Part shown: positions 41,927 through 44,900 of the stretch, piece after piece
Layout: the number at the start of each line of letters is the position of its first letter
Position numbering within the stretch: the first letter of the stretch is position 1
Notes under the pieces: model-generated
The model's database searches: none
What the model was told of the DNA's origin: nothing
The model's input: only the letters and a program-made list of their open reading frames with translations
Position numbers and translations under genes: made by a program
Source: Tubulanus polymorphus
Taxonomy: Eukaryota; Animalia; Nemertea
Length of the DNA: 64,000 bases
Direction: 5' to 3'
Assembly: GCF_964204645.1 (NCBI RefSeq)
Contig: NC_134035.1
Span: 13,114,451-13,178,450, forward strand

Positions 41927-44900
41927 AATGCAGCTTCAGCTCAGTTTGAAAACGGTAGGTATTTTTTTAAATTCTTGGACCTTAAGGGATTATTGTCGCT
42001 CTTATTTAGTCGATTGATTTGATGCTGGGTTAGGCTTTTACAAACCCGCCAGTCACCTACCTGCCGGAAACGGAACAGAGGGTTTGATTTTGAAATCGAT
42101 AGGCCCTTTATAACTATCTATAAACGTATTATCGGGAACACATAAATCATGGTACATCTCTAAACCTACTATTTGAGGTCTCTTGGCAACTTTGCGCATT
42201 TCCTCGTGTATATCTTATTAGTCAACTTGATAATAGTTTTCGGTAACATTAAAAACCAATTTAATTTTCACTTGAAACCGTTTCGCTTACTCCATCGTAC
42301 GAATTTCCTTTGTATATATTATCATTTAGGCCGCATTTGCCAAAAATTGAAATTACTTTCGATAAAATCCTCTTTCGATCACACGCCATGTGTTGTGTTG
42401 TGTATCAGATACAAGCAGGGAAGATTCGACATCATTTTACGCTTGTAACCAGTAGGGATTCGGAATCTTGATCGTTATTTTTCGCGATGAAATTCCGATC
42501 AGTCATATATATTTATCATTACGTCGTTTGATCGCGGAAAAACTGTTCAGTTTCCTCTGACAGAGAGCGAGAGAGCAGAGAGCTCGCTCGCGGCGGGGAG
42601 GTTATACGAATATTATCACTGTAACCCGTAAAAAAACACACCCTTGAATTATGTATTAATTATGTATTAATATAATATGACCTGAATACATCCTGGAGGT
42701 TCGTTCTGTAATGATACTGATCGCCTGCGTTCGACAACATATACCATTCCTCCCCGTCGAGGGGTGAACTTCGTCATTTCTACGAGAGAGAGGGAGAGGG
42801 AGATGGAGAGGGAAGAGGAACGAGAAATAAGGAGAGGAGATCGGGACAGATGAGAAGGAAGAGAAGGATAATGAGAGGAGAGAAAAGGGGGATAGGGAGA
42901 GATGAGAGGGAGAGGAGAGAGAAGGAGAGGGATAGGAGTAAGGGAGGGAGAGAGAGGGAGGAAGAGGGAGGGAGAGAAAGGGAGAGAGAGGGAGAGGAGA
43001 GGGAGGGAGAGGAGAGAGAAGGAGAGTGGGGATAGGAGTAAGGGAGGGAGAGAGGGAGAGTTGGGATAGGAGTAAGGGAGGGAGAGAGGGAGGAAGAGGG
43101 AGAGAGAGAGGGAGAGAGAGGGAGAGGAGAGGGAATGAGAGTGGGGATAGGAGTAAGGGAGAGAGGGAGGAAGAGGGAGAGAGAGGGAGAGGAGAGAGAA
43201 GGAGAGGAGAGAGAAGGAGAGTGGGGATGGCGAGAGTTAGAAAGAATAGAGTCAGAGAGAGGCATATTAAAAGGGTAAGTGACCCAGGTTTGAACGGAGG
43301 CATTTATTCTGTGTGTGTCTACACGAAACTTCTGAAATATGTAGCCATATTTTCCATAATGCTATAGATAGTGTATGGCGATGCAGAAGGTTGGAAACCG
43401 GCTACACACATCATTAAATAGCTTTTACATGACTATTGATATCTTGGGTTTCTTCTATAAAAGCATCGTAAATCATAATCCCCTATAAATCATCCGACTC
43501 CGATTTCTAAATACTGCGATTGTCATTGTTCGTTTAACTAGAAGAAAACGACTTTCTACACAGTGAATACCCGTTGAGTTCATTCCTCCTCGCTATGTTA
43601 GCTTCATTTGAAGCGATTCGCGACGGATAAGGGACTCGGACATTTAAAATTATTCGATATTCAAACTTTCATCTCGCGAGATCAGCGCTTCCCTGTGGTA
43701 CTCAACTTGAGATTGATAATTGAAAATGATCTGATTTTTTAAACGATGGAAACGGGTTCTGTATTTCCTGAAGGTGACTGCTCGGATACAAATTTCTGAA
43801 TTTTTATTCTTAGTGTGCAAGGATTTTGTCTGATGTAATGGGGGGGGGGGGGGAGAATTCCTGGAAATGTCCAATGAATATAGCAAAGCTGACCATAGGA
43901 TATAGTCGAAATGTCGGATAAACTTCACTAGCTCAAGGGACACATTTCAGACTCTTTTTATTCTTAGTGTGCAGGGATTTAATATCATCTTTACAACACG
44001 GACTCAGAAAGTATTTCATCAACGAGCTCCCAAAAATATTCCTGGGGATGATTTATGAAGGATAAAGTCGAAAGAAGATGATCATCAGGATAAAGTCGAA
44101 ACGTCGAATAAACTACACTAGCTCAAGGAATACAGTATTCCTGAAGATGACTATCAGGATAAAGTCGAAACGTCGAATAAACTACACTAGCTCAAGGAAT
44201 ACAGTATTCCTGAAGATGACTATTAGGATAAAGTCGAAACGTCGAATAAACTACACTAGCTCAAGGAATACAGTATTCCTGAAGATGACTATTAGGATAT
44301 AGTCGAAACGTTGAATAAACTACACTAGCTCAAGGAATACAGTATTCCTGAAGATGACTATTAGGATATAGTTGAAACGTTGAATAAACTACACTAGCTC
44401 AAGGAATACAGTATTCCTGAAGATGACTATTAGTAGATAGTCGAAACGTTGAATAAACTACACTAGCTCAAGGAATACAGTATTCCTGAAGATGACTATT
44501 AGGATAAAGTCGAAACGTTGAATAAACTACACTAGCTCAAGGAATACAGTATTCCTGAAGATGACTATTAGTAGATAGTCGAAACGTTGAATAAACTACA
44601 CTAGCTCAAGGAATACAGTATTCCTGAAGATGACTATTTGGATAAAGTCGAAACGTTGAATAAACTACACTAGCTCAAGGAATACAGTATTCCTGAAGAT
44701 GACTATTAGGATAAAGTCGAAACGTTGAATAAACTACACTAGCTCAAGGAATACAGTATTCCTGAAGATGACAATTAGGATATAGTCGAAACGTTGAATA
44801 AACTACACTAGCTCAAGGAATCCTGAAGATGAAACATTTTCGGACTTATTTTTCTCACTTAGTTTGCAGGGATTTTGTATCACCTCTTAAGACCCCTGTG

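Follow-up and report, generated by a model that had tools for sequence, protein, structure and literature searches.

The window analysed here is the whole 64,000-nucleotide stretch of DNA from the nemertean Tubulanus polymorphus (contig NC_134035.1). Discoidin (PF00754) matches in the window are confined to 57230-63250 on the + strand and a putative signal-peptide ORF starts at 54113, so that every coding exon detected for the discoidin gene, and the ORF as well, lies 9-12 kb downstream of a short tandem array. The array, its decayed relatives and the features upstream of it are the following:

36583-37575, + strand: GPCR-like open frame of 331 aa, upstream of the array
39713-39794, - strand: tRNA gene, upstream of the array
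43765-43854, + strand: still older fragment, a hammerhead 5' half fused to a parent tail and followed by a 14-G run (from the direct-repeat families)
43858-44105, + strand: older decayed copy of the 167-nt parent, plus a partial unit without CUGA in which GUC is kept (from the sequence; 63-86% identity to array units)
44074-44821, + strand: tandem array of a 69-bp unit, 10.8 copies (TRF period 69, 96% matches, score 1363)
44136-44800, + strand: ten complete minimal type-I hammerhead motifs of 44 nt each (per-unit check and pattern matches)
44822-44880, + strand: 3' terminus of the element, where a truncated core runs into a partial 167-nt parent tail that stops just past GGGATTTT (from the sequence; BLAST repeat-block boundary at about 44880)
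51240-51440, - strand: solitary degenerate copy of the 167-nt parent family with a mutated core (CUGCAGA, GUCAAAACG; read from the sequence)

The look-alikes of the GPCR-like frame are mostly molluscan. The decayed copy at 43858-44105, which has two degenerate cores (CUGGAAA and CUGGGGA), was the query that uncovered the 167-nt family. An earlier note on this DNA had placed the array in an intron of the discoidin gene; this is not borne out, as the discoidin matches and the signal-peptide ORF all lie downstream, and none of the exons detected in the window precedes the array.

The tandem 69-nt repeat described in that note is confirmed by TRF, and the direct-repeat family with 69-nt spacing found in the window is the same array. 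The ten hammerheads start at 44136 + 69k (k = 0-9), with the predicted cut after 44174 + 69k, and the claimed stem I, core with an extra U, stem II, palindrome and GUC or GUU triplet were all recovered unit by unit. Helix I (UAUUC/GAAUA) forms 5 of 5 pairs in all ten units and helix II forms 5-6 of 6; every unit has the core CUGAAGA followed by one extra U, and a GAA followed by the palindromic ACGU, while units 1-2 have GUC as their cleavage triplet and units 3-10 have GUU. The conserved core (C3-U4-G5-A6-N7-G8-A9, G12-A13-A14, A15.1/U16.1 and an H17 that is not G) is present in 10/10 units, and so are the extra U between A9 and G10.1, the G10.1-C11.1 pair and the C-G at the palindromic 15.2-16.2. 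The three stem II loop variants named before (AGGATAA, AGGATAT and AGTAGAT) are all there, and AGTAGAT is private to this array, within which it recurs. A9, the extra U and G10.1 together spell AUG, from which the frame runs for nine codons only.

The minimal hammerheads of metazoan Penelope-like elements (PLEs) have one additional base behind A9, pair G10.1 with C11.1, and combine a long helix II with a short helix I and a palindromic ACGU (Cervera & de la Pena 2014, PMC4209133); all four of their hallmarks that are not part of the search descriptor are present in each of the ten array units. The likeness extends to the type-I topology without a real helix III, the palindromic 15.2-16.2, the single unpaired base between A9 and G10.1, the 6-bp helix II, the 4-5-bp helix I and the occurrence of close pairs on opposite strands; the published motifs, however, mostly occur singly or at a distance of about 3 kb within end-repeats, whereas those here stand head-to-tail every 69 nt. 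By these shared hallmarks, the earlier note was right to recognise in the array units true minimal type-I hammerheads of the Penelope/retrozyme kind, and their palindromic ACGU matches the published motifs, consistent with the dimer action that it was taken to imply (PMC4209133).

In the window, 9 sites match a strict hammerhead pattern and 11 match a loose one, versus none for either in 100 shuffles, and in the 268-Mb genome the loose descriptor finds 3,985 sites versus 11 for the reversed-pattern control, an excess of about 360-fold; thus, the motif is not a product of chance. Across four families, 89% of the cells in helices I and II pair, versus 26-44% when the partners are slid, both partners vary in 9 of 11 pairs, and none of 500 shuffles matches the score. 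Families B, C, D and E share the extra base after A9, the G10.1-C11.1 pair and the palindromic 15.2-16.2. Among 333 non-redundant units genome-wide, the core is intact in 306, and 259 retain the core, both helices and the palindrome. These units diverge by about 3%, evenly along the unit and with a peak at CpG sites, and such low and even divergence gives no power to show selection on the ribozyme within the family. Covariation in stems I and II, a check that the earlier note had proposed, is therefore seen across the four families, and the variation within a single family is too small to tell. The Rfam hammerhead models give no hit at the gathering score anywhere in the window, and none at E <= 10 within 43700-45000; genome-wide, RF00163 scores 22.4 bits at most, against a threshold of 34 bits. 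These models include helix III, which minimal hammerheads lack by definition; we take their failure as a limit of the models and not as evidence against the hammerhead motif.

The same ribozyme occurs in arrays of a 167-nt tandem unit, made of the 44-nt minimal hammerhead and a body and tail of about 120 nt, and mixed arrays have both 69- and 167-nt spacings. The 69-nt unit corresponds to the hammerhead plus a 25-nt spacer, as produced by one internal deletion of about 98 nt from the 167-nt unit. The deletion junction by which the 69-nt unit is recognised is matched exactly at 1,173 sites in the genome (0 in the control), which supplies the genome-wide count suggested earlier; the parent junction has 186, making the short unit about six times more numerous. 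Judged by these matches, the 69-nt unit is an internal-deletion derivative of the 167-nt tandem family and has out-multiplied its parent.

Copies of the 69-nt junction lie in many unrelated places, often close to contig ends. At 33 loci the flanks are unrelated, with one exception, and units differ by 2.2 positions per 69 nt between loci versus 1.9 within a locus; this near-equal likeness indicates recent dispersal. The arrays reach up to about 40 units. For 40 of them the ends were mapped by BLAST, with boundaries accurate only to a few bases. About 18 of the 5' starts fall within a dozen bases of the hammerhead 5' edge, 5' ends are otherwise variable, and inverted head-to-head fragments occur at many of them. 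There are two preferred 3' ends, both in the tail; the one near 44880 in the window is common to seven or eight other arrays, and a partial 167-nt-type tail terminates about 15 of 19 arrays built of 69-nt units. The predicted cut site forms the boundary in 1 of 40 starts and 0 of 40 ends. A search of sequencing runs located the array sequence in no RNA run and in a single other one, the independent DNA run X1 (depth of about 14 on unique flanks), whose contigs confirm the repeat and the joints between opposite strands at the hammerhead 5' edge. As described for PLEs, insertions are truncated on the 5' side, have a defined 3' end or tail, form partial tandems and lie beside an inverted copy that is itself 5'-truncated (PMC8557442); all of these traits appear among the 40 arrays and the X1 joints. 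In the Anolis Poseidon element PAc, internal initiation of reverse transcription sets the insertion ends (Frangieh et al. 2024, PMC11167929). In sum, the array ends look like the outcome of PLE-type retrotransposition and not like the ribozyme cut site.

The array probably represents a young copy of a non-autonomous element descended from a Penelope-like retrotransposon, that is, a 'non-LTR retrozyme' in present usage, and we propose the following. First, RNAs spanning several array units would be copied into DNA by autonomous PLEs, through their reverse transcriptase (RT) and GIY-YIG endonuclease. The RT would begin within the parent-type 3' tail and halt at variable 5' points, so that the resulting arrays would have a constant 3' tail, ragged 5' ends and, frequently, inverted copies placed head-to-head. 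Second, after insertion the arrays may grow and shrink by unequal crossing-over like ordinary satellites; growth at the DNA level is suggested by the repeated AGTAGAT variant within the array and by runs of 3- and 5-unit higher order in other arrays. Third, the hammerhead may have been inherited from the junction between a PLE end-repeat and its ORF, with the AUG placed as in the lizard element. Indeed, in PAc as in the 69-nt unit, A9, the extra base and G10.1 make an AUG, the cut site lies 26 bp past the AUG versus a predicted distance of about 25 nt here, and the insertion ends are set by internal RT initiation (here inferred) and not by ribozyme cleavage; unlike the nine codons of the 69-nt unit, the AUG of PAc opens the RT-endonuclease ORF (PMC11167929). 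The ribozyme itself would at best cleave weakly, as a dimer of neighbouring units or with the aid of a PLE protein, and the spread of the element apparently needs no efficient cleavage. As for candidate partners, the genome has at least 150 matches to the GIY-YIG domain; many of them belong to open frames 817-841 aa long, and inverted pairs are common. One such copy lies about 2.5 kb from a 69-nt array, near 31.46 Mb on contig C2. No PLE ORF was found near four solitary family-A copies, and no long PLE-like frame in the window or in the array loci examined.

The proposed element shares much with the animal non-LTR retrozymes: short AT-rich tandem repeats with a type-I hammerhead in each unit, dispersed arrays with multimers enriched near chromosome ends (here, contig ends), and co-occurrence with and descent from PLEs (here proposed). 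According to a recent preprint, PLE end-repeats are the source of retrozymes, whose consensus lengths range over 51-972 bp and whose multimers are enriched at chromosome ends (Li, Clavereau & Pollet 2026, preprint 10.64898/2026.07.22.740005). At least two consecutive complete type-I hammerhead units make a retrozyme in that work, and the array has ten. The earlier note called the unit much smaller than typical animal retrozymes, which holds against the 170-400 nt of the classical ones (Cervera & de la Pena 2020, PMC7229834) and fails against the preprint's families, within whose range the 69-nt unit falls. The classical retrozymes have canonical hammerheads with loop-loop contacts and highly paired circles seen on gels; the 69-nt unit, known here from DNA, has a minimal hammerhead instead, and its folding stability does not stand out from that of shuffles.

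Type-I hammerheads that have a weak helix III and are most active as dimers also occur in newt satellite 2 and Schistosoma Sm-alpha, both of them transcribed repeats of a satellite or SINE-like kind. In these, however, the unit measures about 330 nt, the hammerhead is canonical and its self-cleavage is proven, whereas the 69-nt unit is known from sequence.

Alternatively, the array could be an inert satellite in which the hammerhead is a fossil, and which spreads and grows at the DNA level by unequal crossing-over, ectopic recombination or reintegration of extrachromosomal circles, with no part for the PLE machinery. The higher-order runs, the private variants duplicated inside arrays, the uniform CpG-biased decay that does not spare the core, and the enrichment near contig ends, as in many satellites, all fit such a history. 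However, the arrays sit at more than 30 loci with unrelated flanks, their defined 3' tail ends, ragged 5' ends and head-to-head inversions are hallmarks of PLE insertion and not of recombination, and the between-locus differences point to recent dispersal, which makes this alternative unlikely.

Another possibility, and the main reading of the earlier note, is an active mini-retrozyme, in which dimeric hammerheads cut the transcripts into 69-nt RNAs that circularise and give rise to new arrays by rolling-circle reverse transcription. The ten consecutive complete motifs are what it would require, 259 of 333 units keep the core, both helices and the palindrome, the palindromic ACGU would allow a dimer with the adjacent unit (PMC4209133), the short unit is the commoner one, and the array falls within the formal 'active retrozyme' class of the 2026 preprint, its motif having an MFE of -5.2 kcal/mol. 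Against this stands, first, the make-up of the arrays: A and T variants at unit position 57 are mixed in 22 of 22 arrays examined, and two variants in every array argue against copying from a single 69-nt circle. Together with the parent-type tails and the near absence of the cut site from the array boundaries, this disfavours the earlier suggestion of a satellite made by retrotranscription of a mini-circle.

Second, efficient cutting into 69-nt pieces, as the earlier note envisaged it, is disfavoured on several counts. In nearest-neighbour folding, a hairpin at the deletion junction (GGAAUAC/GUAUUCC) has a predicted pairing probability of about 0.46, versus about 0 for helix I, for whose 5' strand it would compete. 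The predicted thermodynamics favour the active fold in neither the 69-nt nor the 167-nt unit, which is not decisive, since a kissing-type dimer lies outside the model; self-pairing is not high relative to shuffles (z = -0.74 for the 69-mer, -0.44 for the 167-mer). GUU is a poorer cleavage triplet than GUC, and its presence in 314 of the 333 units (94%) looks like CpG decay of GUC. In published work, multimers of minimal hammerheads cleave weakly (PMC4209133), one of nine frog dimers was cleaved, and cleavage of the PAc hammerhead required protein, with 0 reads ending at the cut site (PMC11167929). Overall, we regard an active mini-retrozyme as quite improbable.

A related reading is more doubtful still, namely that the 69-nt unit is a minimal 'defective-interfering' retrozyme, processed in vivo, through dimers or a PLE protein, into linear and circular RNAs of 69 nt. 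The smallest viroid-like RNAs have about 220 nt. If the reading were true, the RNA would lie far below that size, and the sixfold excess over the parent would be the replication advantage of a shorter RNA.

The earlier note also suggested that the array attenuates its host gene, by self-cleavage in an intron of the discoidin pre-mRNA that lowers gene output. The hammerhead sense strand does agree with the strand of the discoidin exons (+); however, those exons and the putative signal-peptide ORF lie downstream of the array, the tRNA gene and the GPCR-like frame lie upstream, and retrozymes are reported to be depleted from introns (preprint 10.64898/2026.07.22.740005). The array is, moreover, one of many: more than 1,000 units at many unrelated loci mean that it is not specific to the discoidin gene. 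No role in that gene is indicated, and we hold such regulation to be highly improbable. Finally, a chance look-alike of the hammerhead in an ordinary satellite, to which the lack of Rfam matches even at E <= 10 might seem to point, has a negligible likelihood, and is rejected for practical purposes by the genome-wide excess and the cross-family covariation, the Rfam mismatch being expected of models that require helix III.

That hammerhead-bearing tandem repeats of animals are offshoots of Penelope-like retrotransposons is a known picture, of which the array of Tubulanus polymorphus offers a further clear example. Its history is legible: a 167-nt parent gave, by one deletion, a 69-nt unit that now has about six times the parent's number. 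The ends of 40 independent insertions ignore the cut site, and the successful lineage has GUU and a competing hairpin, which speaks for the idea that these elements can spread without efficient self-cleavage. Because multimers of a 69-nt unit are easily synthesised, the unit may also provide a handy substrate for tests of dimeric or protein-assisted cleavage by minimal hammerheads.

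At the sequence level, the earlier note's description of this satellite as a run of ribozyme units is accurate to every detail, since Tandem Repeats Finder and a parse of each unit recovered the motif features together with all three stem II loop variants that it had named. The array and its motifs are placed as follows:

44074-44821, forward strand: tandem array of the 69-nt unit (Tandem Repeats Finder: period 69, 10.8 copies, 96% matches)
First at 44136, spacing 69 nt, forward strand: ten complete 44-nt hammerhead motifs (per-unit parse)

According to the parse, helix I (UAUUC/GAAUA) has five of five pairs in all ten units; each complete motif holds the core CUGAAGA plus one extra U, helix II has six positions, five or six of which are paired depending on the unit, and the 3' part reads GAA and then palindromic ACGU. 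Units 1-2 carry C just before the cut and units 3-10 carry U; an 11th, truncated core at 44822 continues into a different tail. A strict pattern matched the window nine times and a loose one 11 times, with no match in 100 shuffles for either; a chance origin of the window motifs is excluded.

The search with Rfam hammerhead models that the earlier note proposed gave no match in the window at the gathering score, none in 43700-45000 even with E <= 10, and none in the whole genome with RF00163 (best 22.4 bits, threshold 34 bits); these models include helix III, and the window motif is without it. The standard to apply is instead the minimal hammerhead (min-HHR), which Cervera and de la Pena (PMC4209133) defined in Penelope-like elements (PLEs) of animals; it lacks helix III and is expected to act as a dimer. 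Helix II is long in these motifs and helix I spans 4-5 bp, and four further traits lay outside the published search descriptor: covarying families, a single base separating A9 from G10.1, pairing of G10.1 with C11.1, and palindromic 15.2-16.2 positions (PMC4209133). Every published hallmark, both helix lengths included, is present in the motif of the 69-nt unit. A loose descriptor fixing the core, G10.1/C11.1 and the A-S-S-U-H end only found 3,985 sites in the 268-Mb genome, compared with 11 for the pattern read backwards. These matches form several families whose helix II is wholly different yet complementary: GACUAU/AUAGUC in the window array, GGCUGU/ACAGCC, GAUCUC/GAGAUC and GCUUCU/AGAAGC; helix I changes in step too (UAUUC/GAAUA, CCAC/GUGG and ACAC/GUGU in the flanks of the family members compared). 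Indeed, the covariation in both helices that the earlier note had asked of genomic copies is seen across four families: in a gap-free alignment of 16 motifs, a small, hand-picked sample of about four independent lineages with the helices outside the search pattern, nine of 11 pairs change on both sides, pairing cells reach 89% as aligned versus 26-44% with partners slid 1-3 columns, and the observed covariation score was reached by none of 500 shuffles. The motif belongs to the PLE min-HHR class, and its sequence features point to a genuine hammerhead of that type. Separately, loop 2 starts with U-A-G in four families with otherwise unrelated helix II (alignment columns 21-23; 44224-44226, for example), A22 and G23 being invariant across the four-family alignment; this could be a tertiary contact, a protein-binding site or mere shared ancestry.

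The 69-nt unit is not special to the window locus, and a two-unit query matched at least 222 of 511 candidates, spread over many contigs. A degraded copy immediately upstream of the array, at 43858-44105, pointed to a family of tandem arrays whose period is 167 nt and which bear the same hammerhead. Relative to the 69-nt unit, the 167-nt unit has ~98 nt more, inserted between the spacer and helix I, and some arrays mix both spacings; the 69-nt unit is therefore an internal-deletion derivative of this parent. One junction is common to all 69-nt units, and therefore the deletion arose a single time. A 22-nt pattern for this junction has 1,173 exact matches in the genome and none in the control; the corresponding parent junction has 186 genome matches with one mismatch permitted. 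Among the matches listed, places concentrate near contig ends; all 15 listed for contig C1 (32.06 Mb) fall at 31.19-31.40 Mb. On contig C8, also among the matches listed, 167-nt arrays lie at one end and 69-nt arrays towards the other (spans compared, 0.2-2.3 Mb versus 14.5-16.2 Mb), so that the two forms hold partly separate territories.

For the array ends, 60 genomic loci were merged into 39 non-overlapping segments, and repeat blocks were mapped. The outer flanks are unrelated among 33 loci, one pair excepted, which argues that the arrays probably spread by transposition and not within larger duplications. In the 40 arrays whose two ends were both visible, the 5' ends are variable, about 18 lying within a dozen bases of the hammerhead 5' edge; the 5' end falls at the predicted cut site in one array only and the 3' end in none. 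A partial parent-type tail closes about 15 of 19 arrays built of 69-nt units, with two preferred 3' end points, one shortly past the GGGATTTT motif, as in the window array (~44880), and the other past CATCAATGG. A sister subfamily has solitary copies (~165 nt) that share the 5' and 3' limits of the arrays. A short inverted copy adjoins the 5' end of many arrays, and in contigs from an independent DNA sequencing run (depth ~14 on unique flanks), joints of opposite strands occur at exactly the part of the unit where inverted copies abut. In a search of sequencing runs for the repeat, this DNA run was the only one to contain it, and RNA runs gave no match. The insertion signature published for PLEs (PMC8557442) consists of heavy truncation at the 5' end, partial tandems, tails and a neighbouring 5'-truncated copy in inverted orientation, and the array ends of the satellite show that signature; they also fit reverse transcription begun inside the RNA 3' region, as in PMC11167929.

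The genome holds at least 150 GIY-YIG matches, many of them within 817-841-aa open frames and frequently arranged as inverted pairs; these abundant frames are likely the autonomous partners, and we infer a tie between the PLE end-repeat and the 167-nt unit. On contig C2, a GIY-YIG match at 31463870-31463971 (reverse strand, 391-aa frame) lies ~2.5 kb from a long 69-nt array at 31466457-31467972 (forward strand); this pair, near 31.464-31.468 Mb, may be a head-to-head autonomous element and array. In the window, purine-rich (AGGGAG-like) repeats at 43000-43230 and their reverse complement at 45920-46500 form inverted, low-complexity blocks ~3 kb apart that bracket the array. Microsatellite targets are reportedly favoured by PLEs. 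Within the motif, an AUG is formed by A9, the extra U and G10.1, at 44147-44149 and at the same place in each unit, in families A (that of this satellite), B, C and E. The cut site lies ~25 nt past this AUG in the 69-nt unit, and the frame closes after nine codons; the AUG-to-cut geometry is the same as at the ORF start of the Anolis Poseidon element PAc (PMC11167929), a detail that ties the motif to the PLE ORF start.

The earlier note had suggested that the satellite was made by retrotranscription of a mini-circle. If one 69-nt circle had been copied by a rolling-circle process, the resulting arrays should have been uniform at birth; at unit position 57, where the base decides whether one pair of helix II is closed or open, A and U are mixed in all 22 arrays of four or more units, and this origin is disfavoured. 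Some arrays contain 3- or 5-unit higher-order runs, and differences per 69 nt amount to 1.9 within arrays and 2.2 between them. Among 469 units scanned, the AGTAGAT variant is restricted to window units 5 and 7, which therefore indicates a local two-unit duplication. Mixed variants, divergence within arrays close to that between them, and local duplication suggest that heterogeneous multimers founded the arrays, which unequal exchange later reshaped as it does ordinary satellites.

Whether the units cleave has to be weighed on both sides. The core, both helices and the palindrome are intact in 259 of 333 units, and neighbouring units would be able to supply the dimer partner, which speaks in favour of the predicted cleavage. 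On the other side, in the predicted fold the deletion junction gives rise to a hairpin, GGAAUAC/GUAUUCC, immediately upstream of the core (pairing probability ~0.46, versus ~0 for helix I), GUU stands in place of GUC in 314 of 333 units, and the 4-bp ACGU duplex is, by our own estimate, marginal as helix III. Because C17 and the following G1.1 make up a CpG, and older units in the window array retain GUC, GUU looks like DNA-level decay tolerated by a successful lineage. Published min-HHR dimers and trimers cleave weakly (PMC4209133), and cleavage was seen in only one out of nine frog retrozyme dimers. The PAc hammerhead requires the element's protein for cleavage, insertion in vitro can do without this hammerhead, and none of the RNA-seq reads ends at its cut site (PMC11167929). 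Taken together, the hairpin, GUU, the marginal helix III and the published data count against efficient cleavage.

The gene context of the array is as follows:

36583-37575, forward strand: GPCR-like frame, upstream of the array
39713-39794, reverse strand: tRNA gene with a long variable arm (RF00005, 66.3 bits), 4.3 kb upstream of the array
Start at 54113: signal-peptide-like ORF
57230-63250, forward strand: discoidin-domain matches, the only ones in the window

The discoidin matches and the signal-peptide-like ORF thus leave the array 9-12 kb upstream of known coding exons, and no exons were found between the tRNA gene or GPCR-like frame and the array. A position within a 5'-UTR intron is conceivable, though unsupported. 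The same unit occupies many unrelated loci, which makes a function specific to the discoidin gene unlikely.

Formally, the 69-nt repeat qualifies as a non-LTR retrozyme, and its length is inside the 51-972 bp already reported (10.64898/2026.07.22.740005). Unlike classical retrozymes, it is without strong self-pairing (z = -0.74 for the 69-mer and -0.44 for the 167-mer). The claims of a discoidin intron, of host-gene attenuation and of 69-nt circles are unsupported or disfavoured; the array itself is a real, correctly described ribozyme satellite, of a motif class and length range already known. Two minimal hammerheads of other families also lie in the window, at 16471-16505 (reverse strand, helix II GCUUCU/AGUAGC-like) and 31815-31848 (forward strand, GGCUGU/ACAGCC), and they show that this genome is densely peppered with such motifs.
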